Under the pieces are notes generated by a model that was not told where the DNA came from, searched no databases, and worked only from the letters and a program-made list of their open reading frames with translations. The position numbers were made by a program, and so were the translations under genes. Of a stretch of 64,000 nt of DNA, positions 2,689-64,000 are shown piece after piece. Each line of letters begins with the position of its first letter. Positions within the stretch are counted from its first letter, which is position 1. Location of the stretch: positions 57,476,642-57,540,641 of the forward strand of contig NC_068984.1 in the NCBI RefSeq assembly GCF_001194135.2, written 5' to 3'. This DNA is from Octopus bimaculoides (lineage: Eukaryota).

Positions 2689-2887
2689 GTAAGTAACTCA
2701 GCAGTCTTTGAAGTGCTAATTATTTTGATAAACACCTTAACCCTTTTGATACCAACCTGCCTGAGATTATTCCTTGTTCTGTAATACAAACTTCCTGTTT
2801 TAAAGTGATCTAAATTAGGAATTTCAATTTGTGTTCTAAACGCCAGCTTAAGATTTTGGGAGATTACATGTACTCCAGTGTTCAAAT

Positions 2888-3018
2888 GGTACTTACTTTA
2901 TCAACCCCCAAAAGGATGAAAGACAAAGTCAACCTCAGCAGAATTTGAATTCCGAATATCAAGCCTAAAGAAATGCCACTAAGCATTTTGTCCAGTGTGC
3001 TAACAATTCTGCCAGCTC
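2888..3018 (+). repeat. Dispersed SINE/LINE-tail repeat (ggtact..tttatc.accc..aaaggatgaaag.caaagtcaacctc..cagaatttgaa)
   Basis: Further copies at ~10020-10161, ~17536-17662 and ~29620-29712 (-). Confidence 0.75.
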
Positions 3019-9000: not shown

Positions 9001-9346
9001 TAAAAGTAACTTTTGGTAGTGGTAGATATACATTTAAGCTTTACCATGAAATGAAGATATTTAAACTAACATTGTTGAAAAATCTTCTCAATATATCTCA
9101 TGGTAATATACTTGAAAATATGTTTCTTTTTACAGGCTCGATGTCCTCTTTATCTCCTTATCTCCTGCTTTTTTTCTGAATGTATTTCTTGCTTAATGAC
9201 ATACCTTTTCAACCAATATACATATATATATACACACACACATATATATACACACACATACATGTATACACACACATATTTGATATCCCTTCTCTTCTTC
9301 CCTATCTATCTCCTCTCAATTTTTGTTCTTTGGTATTATCTTCCAG

Positions 9347-9604
9347 GGTTGCCGCTTACTACAAGACATGAAACAGATACCATTAGAAGGATTCTTACTC
9401 ACCCCAGTACAGAAAATTTGCAAGTATCCATTACAGTTGGCTGAACTTCTAAAATATACATCAACCTCCCACCCAGATTATCATGATGTCTGTGAGGCTC
9501 TAGATGCTATGAAGAAGATAGCTTGCCTTATTAATGAGAGAAAACGAAGAATGGAAAGTATTGAGAAAATAGCTGAATGGCAGGCAACAGTCGAAGACTG
9601 GGAG
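9347..9604 (+). CDS. ARHGEF9: RhoGEF exon (DH C-terminal half)
   Basis: ttccag|GGT...GAG|gtaaga; 258 nt; [38 protein letters not shown]...[25 protein letters not shown], the canonical DH signature of this family. Confidence 0.96.
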
Positions 9605-11522
9605 GTAAGAGTTCCTCTTGACTATTCTTTATTTGACGACTTCTTTACTATGATAACCACACATTTATTTTGTGGTTTCTGTTACAATACAAGTTTACTG
9701 CGTTATATGATGTTCAAGTGCAGTGTATGCATATTATAGAAGTTAGGTGTAGTGGTTTAGGTATTAGGCATAAATCTTGATGCATTTACTTCTAGGTTAG
9801 GCATGGGCAAAAGTTTTTTTCTGTAGTGGGCCTAATAGAATACAGTTCATCATAAATCAGGTCACACCACTGAAAGAATAATTGAAACGTCATATGTAGA
9901 GCAGTGTACTTTTTGTCATAATACATAAAAATTTGAGTGAATAAGAGAAATAATGGTTTCAAATTTTGGCACAAGGCCAACAATTTCAGATGAGGGGTCC
10001 AAGTTGATTACATCAGCTCCAGTACTCAACGTGTACTTATTTTATTGAGCTAGAAAGGATGAAAAGTAAAGTCAACCTCCGTGGAATTTGAACTCAGAAC
10101 ATAAAGGTGGATGGAATGCCTCTAAGTATTTTGCCCAGTGTGCTGACAATTCTGCCAGCTCAAAAATTGTTCAAATTAATGGAATCACGCTTAAATATAA
10201 TGTTACAGAATATTGGTACAAAAATAGTTTTGTGTTTTTAGGGACATGACATTTTGCATGTGATATAAAAACACATAATGGGCCACATGCACCTGAATAC
10301 TGTGTGTTACTCGTATCTGGTCTAGATATTTAGTGAGACATAGTTGGTAATTAGTTATAGTTTAAGATGGAAAGAATGACAGAGGGGAGCCATTATTAAA
10401 ACATTAATGATGTACACCAAACATTCTATACATTTACATATCCATAATGCTGAATCTCCAATCAAATTTACAGATTTCAGTTGCCTGTTCCTATGCATTA
10501 AGTCTACCCAAGTAGAGATGACTAGAGACACTCGACACCAATACAGTGATCAGTTTCATTTTTTTGACATTAAAAAAATAGAAGCAAAGATCAGGTGGAT
10601 ATGGTATTGGGCTATCACTTCAGTAGCCTTGAGCTCAACAGGTCTGACTGCAGGTGGTGTTATGTTGCACTCACCTCTATACACTTCAATACATTATGCT
10701 ATTATATCATTGCTACTTTTACAATAGAGGGAGAGATATAGTAAATTCTGGCATAAATTGATCATAATAAGTAGAGGTACAAAACCAAATATTTTAGTGT
10801 ATGCAATCTAGTGGCCTCCTGTCTCTCGTGCCTCCATCAATCTATCATTTTCAGCAAACTTCATATATATTTGAAATTGCTTCATTTTATTTTTCTTCTT
10901 AAGGAATTTTTCAAGTGTTATATAACTTAATTAAATTGGATCTCTAGGTGAAGATTTGAGCTGCTAGCATACTTTTTTGCTGAAGAGGTTTTTTTAATGA
11001 ATCATTTTGGAAATGTGAAGTGAGTTTTTCATTCTGCAGTGCAAGAGTTATTTAACTCATTTTTACACAATTAATTATTTTAAAGTATTTGATTTATTGT
11101 GTTTAACAACTTTGAATTTTTTCCATCAATTCAAAGTTTCTGCCCCACCAGAATTTGTAATAGGTTCGTAACCCATTAGAATAGTAGTTTAGTAAAAGAG
11201 ATCTTGTTCTCACTATGTACTTTTTACATTACTGCAGCAGACATCAGTTACATTTAGTTTATATTACAAAAGTTGGTTCTATCTGTGTATATGTTTTCCC
11301 ATATGTGTATCCACAAGAATGCAGCTTGCGTGAGAAAGTCAATGAGATATTTAGTGACAGATGAAGTGGGGAGAAGTGCTGTGGCACTTTGCAACCTTCG
11401 TTGAATTTTGTGCTGGTGAATTTTAAAGAATAATTTTTTGAGCTGCGTAGCAGCGGTTTCAGTATTTACGTGTTTTGATTGTGTTTTCTCTTCTCGTAAG
11501 AGAGGAGACGGCCGGTTAAGGA

Positions 11523-12389
11523 ATGTCTGAAGACAGTTATTCAAACATGTCTTCGTCCGAGGAGGAGTTGCGGGAGGCTGTGAAAAGAATGGACCAAATG
11601 CTGACAGCAGGGAACAGGAATTTTGCTGATGCAGCAAGGTGTAAGGAGACGGAACTGAACATCGGCAAACTAGGAAAGTATAAAAGTGAAATGACACGAG
11701 ACGGGTTCGAAGTGAAGCTGAAGCCCCCGCAAGAAGTAAAAGACGGGATAAGGGAGAAAACGATAAGTTATCGAACATATTCGATAAATAAGGGAAAAAT
11801 TGATGTCGTCACGACAGAGAAAATAGAACAGGCGTTGAGGCAGATTTGGGATGATATAACATACCTGGCTAGCGGTTCCACTTTTGGAACAGTAGAAGTA
11901 AAGTTCCGGAATGCATCAGCAGCAAGGAAACATGCAGCTTCAACAATTCGAAGTGAAGAAGTGGTGCTGTTGCCCACGTATAGAGGCAGGAGAGCGACAA
12001 GAATCACGGTAGAAGGAATCCCACCAGAGATTGATGTGTTCAGGGTGGCAGATGCGGTCCTCCGTGGTAATGAGGACAACATAGTAGTGCTCCAGGCCAA
12101 GAAAAAAGACTGCGTTAACTGGAGAGGTCAGCAATTGGAGATGATAGTCCAAGGGTCAAAAGAAACGGTAGAAAAGATTACAGAGTCTATAACCATGGAT
12201 GAAATAACTATGACTGTTAGGGTGGAAGGAAGAGTTCCACGGTGCTTCAAATGTGGCCTGAAGGGACACATAAGAGCGAACTGCCCTACACCACCCAAAA
12301 TGGTAGAGGAGAGACGGCCTCCACCACAAGAGAGGACACAAGAAGTGGAAAAGGAAACCCCAGAAGATAAGGAATGGGAAACGGCCTGA
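11523..12389 (+). CDS. LINE ORF1/Gag-like nucleic-acid chaperone (RRM-like region + CCHC zinc knuckle), 288 aa
   Basis: CFKCGLKGHIRANC (C-x2-C-x4-H-x4-C); upstream ITVEGIPPEI and TVEVKF segments are RRM-like as in L1/Tx1-type ORF1 proteins (by eye); purine-rich, GC-elevated coding strand. Confidence 0.82.
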   Translation: MSEDSYSNMSSSEEELREAVKRMDQMLTAGNRNFADAARCKETELNIGKLGKYKSEMTRDGFEVKLKPPQEVKDGIREKTISYRTYSINKGKIDVVTTEKIEQALRQIWDDITYLASGSTFGTVEVKFRNASAARKHAASTIRSEEVVLLPTYRGRRATRITVEGIPPEIDVFRVADAVLRGNEDNIVVLQAKKKDCVNWRGQQLEMIVQGSKETVEKITESITMDEITMTVRVEGRVPRCFKCGLKGHIRANCPTPPKMVEERRPPPQERTQEVEKETPEDKEWETA

Positions 12390-12843
12390 GGAGGAAAAAA
12401 AGGAAAAGAAAGTAAGTAATTGTGAACCCCAACCCAGCCAGGGCCCATCCGCTCCCTTGCCACCTCACCCTACCCATACAGACACCAAACCTACCCAATC
12501 CCCTCCAACAAGAAAACAGAAAAAAATAAACACACACGATGAAAATAAGATTTCCCCTCCCCCTGTTTGTTTTGCTTGCGTTCTGTATGAGAACGCGGGA
12601 GATGACATGTTTAAAAGGTTGAACGATTGGAAGGATATGGTGGAAGTAGAATTCGTAGATGATGATGGTGAGACTACGATGTGTTATTTGGTAAACAAAG
12701 AACAATGGGAAATAGTAAAAAAGAATGATAAAGGCATTGATTGGTGGAAAGTCATCGGCAATAGAGGCAAGTTGCCGAAAAGGACTAATTATACTGAACT
12801 AAAAGAGGACTATGGAATTGAACTGCTAGATTTAAGGCATTGA
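12307..12843 (+). pseudogene. Out-of-frame (+1) continuation of the ORF1-like protein: Lys/Glu- and Pro-rich linker plus unknown ~85-aa C-terminal domain
   Basis: Frame 1 is stop-free from 12307 to 12843 and overlaps the end of ORF1; the track ORF 12457..12843 starts at a TTG inside it. Confidence 0.6.
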
Positions 12844-13809
12844 AGGACAAAACGGTATCAATGTAACCACTCGATGTCGGGGGGTCGAGTGAGCATTTCG
12901 CCTCATTATATCATCTTTTTCATAATTCATTCTTTTCTTTTATTTTGTTTCTTTCTTTATACCTCCATTTTATAATTCTAGTTCCCTGATTGTGTTTGTC
13001 CCCTTCTATGTTTAGCCCCTCGTGGGTAATAAAAAAAAAAAACTTTGCAACCTTGCATGTTTTCATCGCTGTTGTAGAGAAATGAAATAAAGTTGTAGAA
13101 GATAAAATAAAAACAAAATAAAAAATAACTTTGGTGGTTCCTTTAAAATGAATGGAATAGCACATAGAAATATCATTTATGCACTGATAATTTAGAGTTC
13201 TATTGAGAAACTTGTCAGCTCAACTGTAATTAATAATACCTTTCTATGTTTATCCAGTATTGTTATTGTTTTAGATTGCTTAACAACCACTAATCTGTGT
13301 GGTATCTTCTGTACTAGCTGTATAGTTTGGTTAAACTCTAAATCAAATCTCTTATCTCAATTCATATCTCATTAAATACTTGGATTATATATTTTAATAT
13401 TGGTAATGATATTTTAACAAGAGTTTTGGAGATCCATAGAAAAGAATTTAACAAAATCCAACACACTTAAGAACCTGATTTCTTGATTGTGTCATTCTAG
13501 ATTATATTTTGATATCTAGCAGTTCTTAATTGACTCTTTCTCATATCGAGTTAACTTTTAATGTAACAGATAGTTGTTGTTGTTTAGCCCCATGCAGACC
13601 TATGATCAGAGAAATTCCACCCATAAACATATATTTCTTTCTCTGCCAAGGTATAGTTTCTGTAGAGTTATTTCATATGTCCTTCCTTTTTAAGAGAGGT
13701 GTTATTTAAGGTAGATTTCTAGCAAGTCCTGTAACTAGTTTAAATCCTTATATTTGGTAGCTCTTTGACATGAAATATTTCGATCCAACAGTTTAATAAT
13801 ATATCTGGG

Positions 13810-17435: not shown

Positions 17436-17723
17436 AAACTAATTTTATAGATACTTCTTTCAAAATTCCTATTTTGTTATTCAGACATTAACTTGTGTAG
17501 GTTGAGTTATATAAAATGTTAGAGAAAGATACTTTATGGTACTTTATCAACTCTGAAAGGATGAAAGGCAAAGTTGACCTCAGCAGAAGTTGAACTCTGA
17601 ACATAAAGCTGGACAAAATGCCACTAAGTACTTTACTAGATGCAGTAACAATCCTACCAGCTCGCTGTCTTCTCTCTCCTCTAATAATGGTTACTGTAAC
17701 TCATTACACATGCGTGCATGCAT

Positions 17724-26885: not shown

Positions 26886-28544
26886 AAAGCTAGAAGTAAG
26901 GTATTTTTGAAGGAACACATTGTTAACTCTCAAGATACTAAAATTAGCTTCCTGATTTGACGTTTAGGTTTCTTATTTATGTTTGATTTTGGTTGAGTTG
27001 TGATAGTTCCACCTAGCTTTCAAATGATTATTCTTCATATATTTCTGTGTACATGAGATCAGGTAACTGCATAAATTAGTGTTAGCATTTTTAACGTAGG
27101 AAGCTAATTAGAAGTAATAATTAATGAAAAAAAAAAAAAATTGGGGATTTATTTTTTTGCAAGTAAAGGAAACAGCTCCTGACAGTTTCCACTTTTATTC
27201 TGGACTTGCTCAGCAAAATGTAGACTTCACATAACTAAAGTAGTCATACATGGTGTAGCAGAGAAAAATAGAATTCTTTAATAAATTATTCAGGAAAAAA
27301 AAAACCATTCACATGAAGAAAAAAGTTACTGCTAACATAATTAATCTCTGAAGCATTAAAAATTTAAATAGACAACATGCTCTTGGATGCAATATATCTG
27401 AATAAAAGATTGGATGATCACAGCTGGAAAGCCAATGTGATCATAGGTCTACTCAAGACTGACAGGGGGTTGGATGACAAAATGACTGGAAGAACTTATC
27501 AGACATCTAAGGCACTTGATCATGAGTATTGTTATGGGGAAACATATAAGACATCATAAAAGAGTAAAGATTATCTTGCTCTTTTACAAGCATTACTTAT
27601 CAAAAGCTGGAAATCAATCAGTTTTTTAAAAAGTGTGTTTGTTTATTTCTGATTTTGGTCCAAGTTATACTATTCATATACTTAACACTCTGTGGAGTGA
27701 AGTATATTAGAGACTTCTCTTAACTTGTTAAATTATTTTGTTAACATTTCAAATGACCTGGTATTTGTCCTCTCATCCTTAGGAAAGCAATGAATTTTAA
27801 ATTAGGACACCTGCCAATGAAGGAACATTTATGTCCTTTTTCAATCTGCTAGAAATAGCTGCCAAATCTTCCATAAATCCATCTAAGGGATATATTGTGT
27901 TGGCCAGTGTAGTTTGTTATATAGAAAAGGATGATATCATCATGGTTTGAATGCTTGTAATCACTGGCTTACTTGAGCTAAACATGAAGCTATGGAATAC
28001 AACCCATGAGATGTAGTTATGTATCTTTATACATCTTGACAGATTTCATTTCTATCAAAGAAAAATAATGTAACATTAATCTTGACTGGTATCACTTTTG
28101 AAGTACTATTAAATTTAAGTGGAGAATGTATTTTATTTTTTTACTGGTTTCAGTTATTGACCTGTGGTAATGTAGGGCACTACTTTCTAGGATTTTTAGT
28201 CAATTATAGTAACCATAGCACTTGTTTCAGTGTTATTTTATTGTTCTATATTATTTCTGATTGGCTAAATTAACATTCTGGACCCAAAATTAGTCTTGTT
28301 TTAGCTGGTTGTGTTGTCAAACAGATACAGACACACATATGAATGTGTATACATGTGTGTACACACATACAGAGATATAGGATGGGTTTGCACTCAGTTT
28401 CTGCCTACCCTATTCCACTCACAAAGCATTGATCAGCCTATGGTTATAGTAGAAGACACTTGCCTAATCTGCTCCAGTGGGAATAAACTTGGAACTATAC
28501 ATATGTGAAGCCAGCTTCTTAAACCACACAACCATTCCTGTACC

Positions 28545-28586
<42 letters not shown>

Positions 28587-29107
28587 NNNNNNNNNNNNNN
28601 NNNNNNNNNNNNNNNNNNNNNNNNNNNNNNNNNNNNNNNNNNNNNNNNNNNNNNNNNNNNNNNNNNNNNNNNNNNNNNNNNNNNNNNNNNNNNNNNNNNN
28701 NNNNNNNNNNNNNNNNNNNNNNNNNNNNNNNNNNNNNNNNNNNNNNNNNNNNNNNNNNNNNNNNNNNNNNNNNNNNNNNNNNNNNNNNNNNNNNNNNNNN
28801 NNNNNNNNNNNNNNNNNNNNNNNNNNNNNNNNNNNNNNNNNNNNNNNNNNNNNNNNNNNNNNNNNNNNNNNNNNNNNNNNNNNNNNNNNNNNNNNNNNNN
28901 NNNNNNNNNNNNNNNNNNNNNNNNNNNNNNNNNNNNNNNNNNNNNNNNNNNNNNNNNNNNNNNNNNNNNNNNNNNNNNNNNNNNNNNNNNNNNNNNNNNN
29001 NNNNNNNNNNNNNNNNNNNNNNNNNNNNNNNNNNNNNNNNNNNNNNNNNNNNNNNNNNNNNNNNNNNNNNNNNNNNNNNNNNNNNNNNNNNNNNNNNNNN
29101 NNNNNNN
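28587..29107. other. Assembly gap flanked by (TA)n
   Basis: N run. Confidence 0.99.
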
Positions 29108-29151
<44 letters not shown>

Positions 29152-31691
29152 TAGAAATGTTCAATAATTCCTTTTCTTTGTTTACATTACAAAGTTATTT
29201 TAAATGCTATAGCAATAAAAAATTAAGTTCAACTTTCCTTTGACCAAGACAGTTAGTCCAAAACCAGCACACATTCCCATTCCATTTAGAGATATATAAA
29301 GGAAAGCAACAAATGGAAATAATTCTCTTTACATTACTAGTCAAATGACTTTATTTCACTTCTTGACTATCTGATATCACAGATGTTTTCAATAGTGAAT
29401 GATGTTATTAGCCTTCTATATCCTATGAGCACTTTGATGAAGGGTCTGTAGTTGTTGCTTGTCTATAATAACTTAACAGATTTATCTAGCTACTATAGGA
29501 TACTCATATCTGTCTGTTGCAGATTACAGGCATTGACCAGCAACAACTACAATCAATAGGATTATTGTTCATTTTGAATTATGTTCTTATTATCAATATT
29601 TGCATTCCTCAAGGTGGTAATCTGGCAGAATTAGCATGCCAGGCAAAATGCTTGGTGACATTTTGTCTGTCTTTACGCTCTGAGTTCAAATTCTGCCGAG
29701 GTTGACTTTGCCTTCTATGTTTTGCAAGTAGTTTAGAATGTCTTAGATGTAAATATATGATCTATTTAAGTCATACACCTTTACACAATGGGTTTTCACA
29801 GTTTCCATCTACTAAATTCCACTAACATAGTATTGGTTAACTGAAAGCTATAATAGAAGACACTTGCTCTTGATACTGTGTAGTAGAATTGAATCTGGAA
29901 CCATGTGACTTGTGAAATGAACTTGTTACAAATATAGTCATTGAAAAGATTAAACTTGCTCTGTTATTAATCATTGTATTACATCAAGCATACATACATT
30001 TATCTCCCAGTGAGATCTTTAATACTTGTCTCTTCAGTCAATGGTTTATTTATGCCCATTCCTTGTGCTTATTTCTAGCTACCCTTAAAATACAAAAGAC
30101 AGTGTAGTTGTGAAGAAGTCTAGAGTTGAATCCCATAACACCCCAGTTTGCTTTTGTTGCTTGGTTATATTTTCAACTTTTCAATGTTATTAAAAAAAAA
30201 TAAAAAGGCAATCCAATTCTTTTCTATTGCCAACTGTCATTTCAATATTTTGAAAGTTTCCACTATGCTGTCATTATACCTGATTAGTTTATTGCTATTT
30301 TAAAAACAACATTTTTAATTGTTTCTCAAAAATGTTTGATAATTTAGTTGTAGGAATAAAATATGTTGAGTGTCATAGACAGCCACACGAACATATCTAC
30401 CATATGGGCCACCTAGTGTGTGAGTTTTGTTAGATACTTTAGATTTTCCCATGAAACATATGCTTCCAATATGTTTTCCATTTCACTCTCAACAGGCAAC
30501 AAATGTAGTTAACTCAAGGAGGTAACACATAATCTATGTCTCCCCCATCTTTCTCCCTCTCATAGTGTCACATTCAATGTATAAAGCACTGCAACAGTCT
30601 CAAAATATTACTGCTAGTGATAATCCAAAATATTGATGCCTAGCATAGATATAAAGGTCTCAGATTTAGAGGCGAGTTGACAGTGTAATGGTATTAATGA
30701 TTTCCCATGACCGGAACAGAAGTGAAAGTTTCAGTCAGGAGTTTATCCCTCCTACTCTACACTGATTACCACACAATAATCACAAGTATCATCGACTTTT
30801 TCTAAATAGAATCAAAAAACAAATACAGACTAAATATTTGCTGTTTCAAGCTCGTTCAGATTTAAATAGTAGTCTTTAGAATGTGAACAAATCATTATCT
30901 TCAAACAGTTTCTGCTAGTTTTACTAGTTTTGAAATAATCTTCTGCACAAATATTTTAATCAATTTTCTGAAAGATTTTTTTTTTTTCATAGCTATATTA
31001 GTACTATGAATGAGTTAACTGTTAACGTTTTAAATGTTAAGTGGTATTATAGACCTCATAAGCACCAATCAGTGTGTTTGCCTTCTTTTGGCCTCAAATT
31101 GATGCTTATAATGTCTATTATTACTATTGATATTCCTACTATTGTTGTTGCTGCTGTACTAAAAACTAACAGTTTTATTTTCTGAAATTGATCCAATATG
31201 TTGTGTTTCTTTACAAACTGATGTGCAAGAATATACCCTATGATATGTAACCATAGCAGACCATCTGTATAGAGTGATGCTATTTAGAGAAAACAGACAC
31301 CATGCTGGTAGTAACAGCTAGACAGTATCTAACACTTGGTTCTTAAAAAGATGTATGCTCTGAATACATTTCTCTCTTATATCTGTGTATGCGCTGTTCA
31401 CAGATGTCTTGTGCATATATTAAATTTTAAATGTGACAATGGATATATCTGAATTTATGCATCTACGCACACTAGCTCATACACACACATACATACAATA
31501 TTGATTTCTTATGTAGACATAGGATTTGTAAGAAAGCTAAAATGAAACTACATGAAGTCCATAACTTCCTCAAGTGCATTAGCAATCAGAATAGAAATAA
31601 AATGGTTACAAGAAATGAAGACTTGATTGCAGACTTAACTTGCCAGGAGCTTACCTTTAATTTATGATAGTTTTACATCTTCCTCTCCAAC

Positions 31692-36500: not shown

Positions 36501-36913
36501 CCAAAATCCAAACTTCAAAGAAATAATAATTAAAAAAAAATGGACAAAAAGAAAATGAATGTAAAAGCAAAAGTAAACATACCAGAGTTGTGATCTTCCA
36601 CCAGAACTGGAGTTCTGACTGTGCTTCTCTCTATATAATATTGCATGCCAAGTCATAAATTATATTAAAAAAAAAAAACATTGCTTGGAAGAAATTACAA
36701 CAGATTAGAACAAAATTATGATTTAAAAGATCTAGAAGAGTTCAAAATATTTTGGAATATGTGCTGTTGATTTCTGGCCTTTGAGTGACATGAATTCTAT
36801 AGAGCTTCTTCAAAAGCTCCTGACACCAATTCAGCTACATTGTCATTAGAAACTGAGGACAATTAGAAATTTGAAAATCTGTTTCTGAGGCAAAAAAAAA
36901 AAAAAAAAAAAAA

Positions 36914-37538
36914 NNNNNNNNNNNNNNNNNNNNNNNNNNNNNNNNNNNNNNNNNNNNNNNNNNNNNNNNNNNNNNNNNNNNNNNNNNNNNNNNNNNNNNN
37001 NNNNNNNNNNNNNNNNNNNNNNNNNNNNNNNNNNNNNNNNNNNNNNNNNNNNNNNNNNNNNNNNNNNNNNNNNNNNNNNNNNNNNNNNNNNNNNNNNNNN
37101 NNNNNNNNNNNNNNNNNNNNNNNNNNNNNNNNNNNNNNNNNNNNNNNNNNNNNNNNNNNNNNNNNNNNNNNNNNNNNNNNNNNNNNNNNNNNNNNNNNNN
37201 NNNNNNNNNNNNNNNNNNNNNNNNNNNNNNNNNNNNNNNNNNNNNNNNNNNNNNNNNNNNNNNNNNNNNNNNNNNNNNNNNNNNNNNNNNNNNNNNNNNN
37301 NNNNNNNNNNNNNNNNNNNNNNNNNNNNNNNNNNNNNNNNNNNNNNNNNNNNNNNNNNNNNNNNNNNNNNNNNNNNNNNNNNNNNNNNNNNNNNNNNNNN
37401 NNNNNNNNNNNNNNNNNNNNNNNNNNNNNNNNNNNNNNNNNNNNNNNNNNNNNNNNNNNNNNNNNNNNNNNNNNNNNNNNNNNNNNNNNNNNNNNNNNNN
37501 NNNNNNNNNNNNNNNNNNNNNNNNNNNNNNNNNNNNNN
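36914..37538. other. Assembly gap
   Basis: N run between an A-tract and (TA)n. Confidence 0.99.
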
Positions 37539-37570
<32 letters not shown>

Positions 37571-60997: not shown

Positions 60998-61378
60998 CTA
61001 GCGACGGCAGGCGAGAAAAAAAATCTTGCAGAGAAGTGGAGCATCTGTTGACTCTCTGCTCAGATTTCGCAAATGCCGCAGAAATTCTGTGGGGGTCCTG
61101 TCACCGAGCTGCTCGTCTGCCATCAGCTCATTGAATCGGCTGGCGGCAGACCTGGTGGTCCGGTGTAGGATCTCGTTCTTCACCTCGTCATATGTGGCGT
61201 CGTCTTTGGGAGATGTAATTAGGTCTCTAGCCGCTTTTGCAAGCGATGGAGGCAGATTGCAATAAAGCAACTTTAATCTCTTGGACGGCGAGATGTCGTA
61301 GATCTGGAAATAGGCCTCCAATTGAGCGAAATAGACATCAGTATCACCGATGAATGTGGGTAAACCATGCGACATGTC
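60998..61378 (-). mobile_element. Ty3/Gypsy gag N-terminal fragment (truncated, frameshifted at 3' end)
   Basis: MSHGLPTFIGDTDVYFAQLEAYF...YDEVKNEILHRT...LMADEQLGDRTPTEFLRHLRNL matches the 'FAQxEaxF...YxxLKxxIxxR...LGDRxPSxxLRxM' Gypsy gag pattern; no LTR or pol seen. Confidence 0.8.
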
Positions 61379-61647
61379 TACTGGGATGACTCCGTCAAGG
61401 TAGGAAAAGGGAATGGAGAGAAACAATGAAAAACGAAGTCATATGAAATATACAAGAGGCCAAAGAGAAAATTCACCGCTAAAAGAAGACACAATATTTT
61501 TCGTGTTCTTGTTTTGTGTTTTTGTAAGTTACAGTGTGCACAAAAGAGACAGAAAAGAAAATAAAGCTGTACAAAAAATTTTGTTTTGTTTGTGTTTTTT
61601 TTTTCTTCGCGAGGGTTGTTTCTTTGTACTGTCTGTAGAAAAAAAAA

Positions 61648-61820: not shown

Positions 61821-61912
61821 GGCATTGTTGACCAACCTTACATCGTTGCTGCAAGGAAAAAAAAACAATACAGGCAAAAAAAATGTTATTATTTTTTTTG
61901 TTATATATATGT

Positions 61913-62562
61913 NNNNNNNNNNNNNNNNNNNNNNNNNNNNNNNNNNNNNNNNNNNNNNNNNNNNNNNNNNNNNNNNNNNNNNNNNNNNNNNNNNNNNNNN
62001 NNNNNNNNNNNNNNNNNNNNNNNNNNNNNNNNNNNNNNNNNNNNNNNNNNNNNNNNNNNNNNNNNNNNNNNNNNNNNNNNNNNNNNNNNNNNNNNNNNNN
62101 NNNNNNNNNNNNNNNNNNNNNNNNNNNNNNNNNNNNNNNNNNNNNNNNNNNNNNNNNNNNNNNNNNNNNNNNNNNNNNNNNNNNNNNNNNNNNNNNNNNN
62201 NNNNNNNNNNNNNNNNNNNNNNNNNNNNNNNNNNNNNNNNNNNNNNNNNNNNNNNNNNNNNNNNNNNNNNNNNNNNNNNNNNNNNNNNNNNNNNNNNNNN
62301 NNNNNNNNNNNNNNNNNNNNNNNNNNNNNNNNNNNNNNNNNNNNNNNNNNNNNNNNNNNNNNNNNNNNNNNNNNNNNNNNNNNNNNNNNNNNNNNNNNNN
62401 NNNNNNNNNNNNNNNNNNNNNNNNNNNNNNNNNNNNNNNNNNNNNNNNNNNNNNNNNNNNNNNNNNNNNNNNNNNNNNNNNNNNNNNNNNNNNNNNNNNN
62501 NNNNNNNNNNNNNNNNNNNNNNNNNNNNNNNNNNNNNNNNNNNNNNNNNNNNNNNNNNNNNN
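61913..62562. other. Assembly gap
   Basis: N run. Confidence 0.99.
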
Positions 62563-64000
62563 TAGGGTTAACAGTCTAGTTAGGGTTAGGGGATTAATAC
62601 GATATACACTGTTACAGCGCTAACTGTTTTCAACTGAATAGACGTCAGTGATTAGTAGAAATTATCGAAATAAGACAATTTTTTACATGAAATAAATTCG
62701 AATACAAAAATTTTTTTCTGTTCTATAACACAAAATAGATAAGTATACGAAGTTTCAAAGTCTTTCGGTACCAAAAACACTACATAAAACATAAATGAAA
62801 ACTGGTGCCCCCGTTTTGAAATAGATCCCAATAATTTATTCCTGGTTGGTGTAGAGCCGTTTCATTCCGGGGTGAAACCGGCATGCCGCTATAATACCAA
62901 AGGAAGCTTCGACCACATGTCGGTGGAGAGCTGAGAGATACGTGTTGACACGACGCCTGCTGGATGAATAAGAGAAGGAACGCTATAGCTTTTTTCTCCA
63001 CCTGTTGCATTGTGCATGCGTGCTCGGGTACTACCGCTGGCGGCAAATCCCTTGCACATGAGCAATGGCACTTCCCAAGATGGCGGCCACACGCGCCACT
63101 ACAAACTATAAGCTTTGGGATTACCATAGCAATATAACTTTTTAACGATATATTTTTCACAAAACTTATCTTGAATTTCAGTGGAATGACCCAGGGTTGA
63201 TGTTTTCAGCCACCATGTATCTTTCTGAGCATTAGTCAGTTAGTTCCCATATCAGCACCCAGGTTTGTATATGTATATTTTATGCGTATTAATATCGATG
63301 TAACTTTTATTATATAGCTAACAAGATTATGAAACAGCTGTAAACGAATGGAATAAAAATCTACCCTCTCACTCACTCACTCTCTCTATATATATATATA
63401 TTTAGATAATATAGATATAAAAATAATTATGAACCTGGAACCCAGACCATGGAACTGGATGTGTGATGCGCACGTCATCGTGCATATTTTCGTTGATAAA
63501 TAATGACGATGAAGCGAAGGAATAGATAGTAAGGGAAGTAATTCTTTCTAAATATTTAGAAAAGTTGTTTCCCTTGCACCATACACTAATTTATGCATAA
63601 TCTTAGTATTAGATATTGGGTTTAATTAGAGAAATTAATATCTAATTTGTAAACTTCCAATTTATATTAAAGAATAAAACTTCAGTGTTAAAGAGTGAAC
63701 AAATCTTGGATAGAATAAAAGAAAACCTTTTTAAAAATATACTAGTGATAAAAATATGTACATTTAGAATTTATATCTCCTCACAGATCAACAAATGTTG
63801 TTGTGGCTGTCTACAAAAGTTTCCATCATATTTGAAATATGAGGATAAAAGAACGGTAATTGATATAATCAGAGAGGTTATTCATTACTCGTTACTTCAT
63901 AACGATAGAGGCTGAAAACTTGGGTAACGACAATGAGTACTACAGTAGAGTCCGAAAGTAATCAAAGTGACTCTACTGAGACTGCTCATCGTTTTGAGTT

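Follow-up and report, generated by a model that had tools for sequence, protein, structure and literature searches.

An ORF2-less derivative of an octopod L1/Tx1-type LINE in Octopus bimaculoides, plausibly copied from a spliced RNA

A 64,000-nucleotide stretch of the Octopus bimaculoides genome (assembly GCF_001194135.2, contig NC_068984.1, positions 57,476,642 to 57,540,641 of the forward strand), here called the window, was found to contain a short retroelement on its forward strand (Table 1). The element is very probably a derivative of an octopod L1/Tx1-type long interspersed nuclear element (LINE) that retains the first open reading frame (ORF1), lacks the second (ORF2) and was mobilised in trans. 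On balance, we read it as an inactive retrocopy of a spliced, ORF1-only LINE RNA, inserted in trans; for the loss of ORF2 itself we lean modestly towards splicing, judging from the boundaries of the missing segment in full-length relatives. The initial annotation of this DNA had called the unit a complete ORF1-only retrotransposon and had named three possible origins. Two of them, a LINE derivative without reverse transcriptase (RT) that uses RT in trans and a retrocopy of a spliced LINE RNA, were supported by the LINE ORF1, the LINE ends and the recurrence of the structure in Octopus sinensis; the spliced-RNA variant is preferred, as the junction falls where full-length relatives have GT...AG-like sequences on either side of ORF2. 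The third, a domesticated gag-like gene, is disfavoured, since both ends are LINE ends. The word complete does not hold, because ORF1 is frameshifted.

The hallmarks of insertion by target-primed reverse transcription were found at both ends of the unit. An exact 13-bp target-site duplication (TSD), ACTTTGCAACCTT, directly flanks it; this 13-mer occurs exactly twice in the window, whereas the chance expectation is about 0.22 matches even with one mismatch permitted, and 1,643 bp lie between the two copies. An A-rich tail with a poly(A) signal, a feature in common with autonomous elements, is present at the 3' end. The direct repeats, the size of the unit, the 124-nt leader and the 3' untranslated region (UTR) followed by AATAAA fused to an A-tail had all been described initially and were confirmed.

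Both ends of the unit were found to be LINE-derived. The 5' start (CGTTGAATTTTGTGCTG) aligned with the start of L011, a shorter element of O. bimaculoides (CGTGCGTCG...TTTTTGTGCTGC), and with that of L002, a full-length element of Octopus vulgaris ((G)GACGTTACTTTGAC); the terminus CGTT... also aligned with the 5' terminus of L001, a full-length element of O. sinensis. The alignment showed the 5' UTR to be homologous to that of L003, an ORF2-less element of O. sinensis, and the 3' UTR aligned with the L003 3' UTR and, less closely, with that of L002 from just past the ORF2 stop. The last ~45 nt (TTGTCCCCTTCTATGTTTAGCCCCTCGTGGGTAATAAA) were 86-88% identical to the L002 3' end, the L011 tail and one SINE-like copy in L003 (SINE, short interspersed nuclear element), and the 3' ends of the relatives read AATAAAGAAAT or AAATAAAATAAAA. 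A 3' tail common to a LINE and its partner is the usual basis of recognition by the LINE RT, and the window RNA may have been recognised by an RT through its LINE-type tail in the same way. A CCC-N5-GGG hairpin was predicted at the 3' end and is conserved; it has just four pairs with weak covariation and was not used as evidence. A run of 25 adenines in L002 was rejected as the LINE tail, as it lies inside the 5' UTR, the true 3' end being ...GGGTAAATAAAATAAAA. The body of an octopus SINE was abundant, with several copies per 20 kb, in L001, L003, L011 and the window (2872-2952, 10001-10100 and 17540-17597). A few SINE copies end in the ~45-nt tail of the clade (L003 6000-6165; tail at L011 9524-9570), so that the general statement that the SINE shares the LINE tail was given up as valid for some copies only; different SINE copies may use different LINE partners.

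A tblastn search with the ORF2 of a related full-length LINE gave no match at E < 1e-4 in the entire window, which agrees with the initial observation that the unit holds neither RT nor endonuclease. The space between the ORF1 stop and the A-tail is just ~200 nt, and neither enzyme is encoded there; the element is therefore non-autonomous. In L002, a 470-aa ORF1 homologue overlaps the start of a 1,131-aa ORF2 with RVT_1 (8e-31), Exo_endo_phos (2e-15) and zf-RVT (5e-9) domains; the best PDB match of this ORF2 was human L1 ORF2p (E 2.5e-71; R2, 1e-24). L001 contained ORF1 followed by a decayed ORF2, and ORF1 followed by ORF2 was also found in L016 from Argonauta and in two short partial contigs (L004 and L015). 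The ORF2 of the O. vulgaris, O. sinensis and Argonauta relatives is ~1,100 aa long and comprises endonuclease, RT and zf-RVT; the segment absent from the window copy is thus the 3.4-kb ORF2 with its endonuclease, RT and zinc finger. The window ORF was identified as a LINE ORF1 because the loci of its homologues carry an ORF2 with APE (apurinic/apyrimidinic-type endonuclease) and RT after ORF1; by its sequence relatives it is the ORF1 of a diverse octopod LINE clade of L1/Tx1 type. The autonomous relatives fit the L1/Tx1 group, to which they are provisionally assigned. L1-Tx1 LINEs were recently active in O. vulgaris, with 13 families and 421 insertions (PMC13282606). The relatives described here resemble them in having an APE, RT and zf-RVT ORF2 with a type I ORF1 protein (ORF1p), whereas the window element is without ORF2. 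In L002 (O. vulgaris OX597840.1, 4447-20000), three full-length LINE copies were found head to tail, repeating every ~5.28 kb, with a 9-nt spacer at the joints (...GGGTAAATAAAATAAAA/cactgataa/GGACGTTAC...), ORF1 and ORF2 of the first copy being intact. Insertion beside the element's own 5' end, unequal crossover and an assembly artefact are candidates for the origin of this array.

The window element passes from the ORF1 stop, after two bases, directly into the start of the LINE 3' UTR. The boundary between ORF1 and ORF2 was compared in five full-length lineages, of which the ORF1s were just 19-35% identical to one another. Four of the five lineages contained GTAAGT at this boundary; L016 from Argonauta was without it and contained GTAAAT and GTAGGT there. 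The background of GTAAGT was 0.225 per kb in the cephalopod DNA examined, and the boundary hexamer is the sole one, or one of two, in each element that has it. This donor-like GTAAGT lies 7-50 nt upstream of the ORF2 ATG in the full-length relatives, and an acceptor-like (Y)AG was found 4-9 nt past the ORF2 stop in 3/3 of them (L002, L016 and L001). The left side of the window junction matches the exon-like AAG or AGG preceding GTAAGT in the full-length relatives, and its right side matches the sequence following the post-ORF2 AG in L016 and L002. The missing segment looks like a GT...AG intron that holds the whole ORF2 including its ATG, and because it is bounded in this way, a spliced LINE RNA is favoured as the source. 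The short spacer after the boundary signal was strongly pyrimidine-rich up to the ORF2 ATG in L001, L015 and L016. The conserved GTAAGT may serve as a donor in splicing, in U1 binding or in the control of translation.

If splicing was the cause, ORF2 would have been removed at the RNA level, as an intron running from GTAAGT to the post-ORF2 AG. The resulting ORF1-only RNA could have originated directly in a full-length element or in an older spliced retrocopy with the 5' UTR promoter still present; the ORF2 protein of full-length elements would have bound it through the LINE 3' tail, and the bound RNA would have been inserted by target-primed reverse transcription. Several points weigh against this account. 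The donor and acceptor were read in relatives from other subfamilies, with ~25-45% ORF1 identity, the polypyrimidine tracts of the acceptors are weak, and the ORF1 stop codon and GTAAGT share bases in L001 and L015. The hexamer could be conserved for another role, for example to bind U1 and so keep premature polyadenylation in check. Internal deletions of another kind do occur in the clade, as seen in L011, and just two copies with the window junction were found, of which the ORF1 cores are 45% identical. A deletion through microhomology, in which window GGTATCAATG and L003 GTAAGCGATG would be what remains of the ORF2 start GTAAGTGATG, was tried and rejected, as AGTATCAGTGG in the L002 3' UTR aligns better.

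The same structure was found in a second species. L003 of O. sinensis is a 1,598-bp ORF2-less element inside a SINE, flanked by a 19-bp TSD (18/19 identical); it is collinear with the window element over its whole length, and ORF2 is missing at the same junction. The element at L011 (O. bimaculoides CM046605.1, 9774-10671) measures 898 bp and has a 13-bp TSD, ACACAACMCAGTT; it shares both LINE ends with the window copy, but a larger, different internal deletion joins ORF1 codon ~215 to the 3' UTR. The L011 element is annotated as the protein LOC106871568, and L003 too carries a LOC gene model. The loci examined thus yielded two copies with the window junction (window and L003) and one with another deletion (L011). 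Nine Logan contigs (L005-L010 and L012-L014) contained decayed ORF1 copies without informative junctions, and none of the Logan contigs L004-L014 contained the ORF2-less junction. From the L003 and L011 insertions it follows that ORF2-less RNAs of the clade were retrotransposed repeatedly and that RT must come in trans.

The insertion of a full-length LINE followed by a one-off local deletion of ORF2 at the window locus is the default account of a truncated transposable element, and nothing specific was found in its favour. Since L003 has the same junction at a non-orthologous site of O. sinensis, in a SINE and with a different TSD, and since the loss is exact to a few bases at both ORF2 boundaries, we consider such a deletion extremely improbable. 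The initial annotation had held that the ORF1-only reading would fall if related copies continued into an ORF2 and the deletion was private to this locus; the relatives with ORF2 turned out to belong to other subfamilies, and the structure recurs in L003.

A self-propagating family like the mammalian HAL1 is another possible origin, though a somewhat doubtful one. ORF2 would then have been lost once, by genomic deletion or by an RT template switch at microhomology (AAG/G), giving an ORF1-only master that kept its promoter and 3' tail and founded its own non-autonomous lineage, the likeness to GT...AG being coincidental. The window and L003 have in common the junction and a CA-rich linker island in ORF1, the latter not seen in L002, L001 or the relative P0001, in keeping with one old lineage, and L011 is a non-splice-like internal deletion in the clade; mammalian HAL1 also shows that such lineages can have repeated origins (PMC5753468). 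However, the ORF1 core of the window is no closer to that of L003 than to that of the full-length L002 (42%), so the monophyly of the ORF2-less copies is unsupported. Both deletion endpoints, moreover, fall on splice-consensus positions conserved across the five full-length lineages. The mosaic of the window and L003 could reflect repeated splicing in several subfamilies, recombination within an ancient ORF1-only lineage, or constraint acting on the RNA.

Had the unit been processed from the polyadenylated mRNA of a gag-like host gene, domesticated from a LINE ORF1, it would have the mRNA-like layout of leader, ORF, 3' UTR, AATAAA, A-tail and TSD seen here, and octopus genomes do list several members of the family under the name 'uncharacterized protein LOC...'. 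Nevertheless, the 5' terminus, the two UTRs and the last 45 nt belong to the LINE itself, the annotated 'genes' examined were single-exon copies of transposable elements (L003; L001, with ORF1 followed by decayed ORF2), an intron-containing parent was not seen among the loci examined, and the ORF is frameshifted. We therefore regard a host-gene origin as very unlikely and retain the spliced LINE RNA as the preferred source.

The 288-codon ORF had been reported as RRM-like with a CCHC motif (RRM, RNA recognition motif). The ORF and the CCHC knuckle were confirmed, whereas two RRM folds were found instead of one. AlphaFold2 modelling with a 72-sequence alignment gave a mean predicted local distance difference test (pLDDT) of 87.7 and a model with an N-terminal helix, two beta-alpha-beta-beta-alpha-beta units, which correspond to two RRM folds, and a CCHC knuckle; a model made with a 4-sequence alignment had a pLDDT of 38.6 and was discarded. 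The best Foldseek matches to the model were tandem-RRM proteins (IMP3 RRM12, E 8e-6). Pfam zf-CCHC matched ORF1 with E 6.5e-4 and 20.1 bits, slightly below the 20.8-bit cutoff, and the knuckle is backed by matches to PDB nucleocapsid knuckles and by conservation among the homologues. There was no Transposase_22 match in the window ORF1. In the classes of Khazina and Weichenrieder, a type I ORF1p has at least one RRM and a CCHC zinc knuckle, and this type is consistent with Tx1 (PMC5203782); on the predicted fold, the window ORF1 is assigned to type I.

When 1.8 billion representative proteins were searched with a profile, ORF1 had 663 homologues at E ≤ 1e-3, of which 202 were at E ≤ 1e-10. The named relatives were all octopod (Octopus bimaculoides, O. 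sinensis, O. vulgaris and Argonauta hians). The profile matched P0005 (E 8e-56) and P0006 (E 5e-45), of which the loci, L002 and L001 respectively, carry ORF2. The closest ORF1s, P0001 and P0002, were 56-63% identical to that of the window (P0001 core, 63%). Searches by k-mer homology found just 3-4 proteins of O. bimaculoides and O. sinensis, the second search being swamped by low-complexity words. No contig on record carries a protein identical to the window ORF, P0001 or P0022, there is likewise no DNA record for P0002, and a search of a phage collection and two metagenome scans found nothing related to the element. Six octopus proteins (P0003, P0041, P0116, P0024, P0060 and P0142) were found to fuse an ORF1 fragment of the clade to unrelated domains, namely ISXO2-like transposase, C2H2 zinc fingers, WD-repeat-like, LDL-receptor class A and astacin; these chimeric gene models are probably annotation artefacts of intronic insertions.

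The initial annotation had listed a further ~150 codons in the +1 frame after the 288-codon ORF. An open frame to position 12843 does exist there; it is the C-terminal continuation of ORF1 and not a separate feature. Within 12385-12415, frame 0 stops at 12387-89, the +2 frame reads LRRKKRKRK and the +1 frame goes on as VSNCEPQP..., whereas the relatives are uninterrupted in one frame across this site (L003, ...SGKRKKRERKKASYNEPQP...; P0001, ...WETVKRKKNRKRKKV...). The +1 frame, open for ~178 codons, holds a P/T-rich linker, encoded by the CA-rich island (12407-12556), and ~90 C-terminal residues. In L003/P0012 of O. sinensis, one ORF spans the RRMs, the knuckle, the basic KRKKRERKK and the P/T-rich linker (EPQP...TDTKPT...PTRKQK); the linker of the window in the +1 frame was 48% identical to this in-frame linker (E 3e-8). 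The island itself (L003 10497-10640) showed 67-82% nucleotide identity over ~150 nt, although the structured ORF1 domains of the window and L003 are just ~50-60% identical, and it was not seen in L002, L001 or P0001. As the basic stretch of the window, RRKKRKRK, sits in the third frame, two indels are implied; by comparison with the relatives, the window copy carries one or two indels in the A-run 12385-12415, and the 288-aa ORF is a truncated reading of an ORF1 originally of ~440 aa. With its continuation in another frame behind a frameshift, the window copy is dead and cannot make a full-length ORF1 protein.

A programmed +1 ribosomal frameshift at ~12385 would leave the copy functional, and it is true that both frames are long and open and that the shift lies in a slippery A-run. 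Every relative with the region reads through it in one frame, however (the ORF1s of L003/P0012, P0001, P0006, P0022 and L002), and the third-frame position of the conserved RRKKRKRK implies two indels; programmed frameshifting is therefore highly improbable, and we hold to an inactivated copy. Homology of the last ~90 residues to the C-terminal domain of other lineages (motif Y..LK..F..DVG) was dropped as a candidate, and in a six-domain C-terminal profile these residues scored no better than 1,000 shuffles. Of the +1-frame stretch, the linker alone is demonstrably ORF1, by sequence similarity.

The window element combines a retained ORF1, an absent ORF2 and LINE 5' and 3' ends, as in HAL1. 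HAL1 ('half-L1') is an ORF1p-only L1 derivative that needs L1 ORF2p and had several independent origins (PMC5753468). Both are ORF1-only with RT from elsewhere, and both consist of 5' UTR, ORF1, 3' UTR, tail and TSD. HAL1 derives from mammalian L1 and has no sequence relationship to the octopod element beyond the LINE superfamily; its ORF1p is of type II (coiled coil, one RRM and C-terminal domain; Transposase_22), whereas the octopod protein is of type I (two RRMs and CCHC). ORF2 was lost at splice-like boundaries in the octopod element, which is known from two same-junction copies, whereas the abundance of HAL1 is demonstrated. The window element is thus functionally HAL1-like and not HAL1 proper. 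The repeated origin of HAL1 was reportedly described by Smit in 1999 and by Bao and Jurka in 2010.

SpIREs of human L1 are retrotransposed spliced LINE RNAs with a TSD, an A-tail and a junction at donor and acceptor sites; they arise by splicing within the 5' UTR or between the 5' UTR and ORF1, which damages the promoter or ORF1, and are evolutionary dead ends (PMC5860796). The octopod element likewise has a TSD, an A-tail and an internal junction that coincides with splice-like sites of full-length relatives. In contrast to SpIREs, the piece that would have been excised, judging from those sites, is the entire ORF2, and the promoter region, ORF1 and 3' tail are left. In Drosophila copia and plant Ty1/copia, removal of an intron spanning pol gives a Gag-only RNA and a higher Gag:Pol ratio (PMC5580714). 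An RNA for the structural RNA-binding protein only would be the functional analogue of the ORF1-only RNA proposed here. These are long terminal repeat (LTR) retrotransposons with another replication mechanism, whereas the ORF1-only RNA of octopus is proposed from genomic DNA. The copia gag-only spliced RNA was reportedly described by Yoshioka in 1990. To our knowledge, a splicing strategy with pol or ORF2 as the intron has been described for no LINE. HeT-A of Drosophila is a non-LTR element whose sole encoded protein is a Gag-like ORF1 product and which obtains RT in trans; it belongs to the Jockey clade, forms telomere-specific head-to-tail arrays at chromosome ends and is beneficial to the host. 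The octopus copy, by contrast, is dispersed, has a TSD and probably lies in an intron.

The kind of element is thus already known from HAL1 and SpIREs; what is new is that ORF2 has apparently been cut out exactly, in the manner of splicing, at signals that the clade conserves. In the literature searched, no description of ORF1-only, trans-mobilised LINE derivatives in cephalopods was found. We tentatively suggest, with more doubt than confidence, that ORF2 of this clade is a conserved, alternatively spliced intron, that a subgenomic ORF1-only mRNA sets a high ratio of ORF1p to ORF2p, and that genomic ORF1-only copies are by-products. If this is true, LINE splicing would uncouple the expression of the chaperone from that of the replicase, in convergence with copia-type LTR elements, and ORF1-only copies with promoter, ORF1 and RT-recognition tail could found self-propagating parasitic families, a simple mechanistic route to the recurrent origin of HAL1-like 'half LINEs'. 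A single diverse LINE clade of L1/Tx1 type accounts, through its ORF1s, for hundreds of octopod 'uncharacterized CCHC proteins', and this clade yields ORF2-less, trans-mobilised derivatives that are prone to gene mis-annotation (L003 and L011). LINE activity in the octopus brain is being actively discussed, and ORF1-only transcripts matter for the reading of LINE RNA and protein signals.

Table 1. Features of the ORF2-less element in the window and of the corresponding boundaries in related loci (loci are numbered in their own coordinates; a slash in a sequence marks the boundary or junction).
Feature	Position	Strand	Sequence or detail	Evidence
5' TSD copy	11386..11398	+	ACTTTGCAACCTT	Exact 13-mer; ends where the LINE-type 5' terminus (CGTT...) starts
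5' UTR (leader), 124 nt	11399..11522	+		Begins with the clade's canonical LINE 5' terminus
ORF1, first 288 codons and premature TGA	11523..12389	+		Homologues, AlphaFold2 model, zf-CCHC
ORF1 N-terminal helix	aa 10-29	+		AlphaFold2 model
ORF1 RRM1	aa 80-153, nt 11760-11981	+		AlphaFold2 model and Foldseek
ORF1 RRM2	aa 156-234, nt 11988-12224	+		AlphaFold2 model and Foldseek
ORF1 CCHC knuckle	aa 240-255, nt 12240-12287	+		Pfam zf-CCHC, PDB nucleocapsid knuckles
Frameshift zone	12385..12415	+	A-rich run	Three-frame translation
C-terminal part of ORF1, +1 frame	12416..12843	+	Stop TGA 12841-43	Linker homology to P0012/L003
ORF2-less junction, between 12845 and 12846	12844..12847	+	AAG/GACA; ...cattgAAG/GACAAAACGG (AAG/GACAAAACG)	Comparison with full-length relatives and L003
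3' UTR, homologous to LINE 3' UTR	12846..13027 (post-stop stretch 12844-13027)	+		Alignment with L003 3' end and L002 3' UTR
Conserved terminal tail	12993-13027	+	TTGTCCCCTTCTATGTTTAGCCCCTCGTGGG	Within 3' UTR
AATAAA merging into A-tail	13028..13041	+	AATAAA 13028-13033; A11-12 tail (A-run 13031-13041/42)	Direct sequence reading
3' TSD copy	13042..13054	+	ACTTTGCAACCTT	Directly abuts the A-run
L002, ORF1/ORF2 boundary	6054		AAG/GTAAGTgATG	
L004, ORF1/ORF2 boundary	1850		AAG/GTAAGTcATG	
L015, ORF1/ORF2 boundary	2063		AGG/GTAAGTaa	
L001, ORF1/ORF2 boundary	11805		ACA/GTAAGTag	
L016, ORF1/ORF2 boundary	11574-11592		AAG/GTAAATcc...AAG/GTAGGT	
L002, after ORF2 stop			TAAatgtAG/ATCAAAACG (also read ...TAAATGTAG/ATCAAAACG)	
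L016, after ORF2 stop			TAAacAG/GACATTG	
L001, after ORF2 stop			TGAttgaaaaAG/G	
L003, ORF2-less junction			...aaaagAG/GACAGG	

At 9323-9560 (+) of the window lies an exon for the C-terminal portion of a RhoGEF/DH domain (Pfam PF00621, E 4.5e-18), and the ORF1-only element is ~1.8 kb downstream of it in the same orientation. The element is probably in an intron of this RhoGEF/DH gene, whose transcripts could be polyadenylated prematurely at the AATAAA of the element. A 142-aa ORF at 60998-61426 (-) matched DUF7041 (PF23055, E 9e-11) and looks like a fragment of the gag-like protein of another retroelement. Runs of N of ~600-700 nt were found at ~28470-29160, ~36900-37560 and ~61900-62570, flanked by TA-type microsatellites, the window being part of a draft scaffold with gaps, and a long imperfect CA/TA-rich microsatellite was present at 1174-1650.

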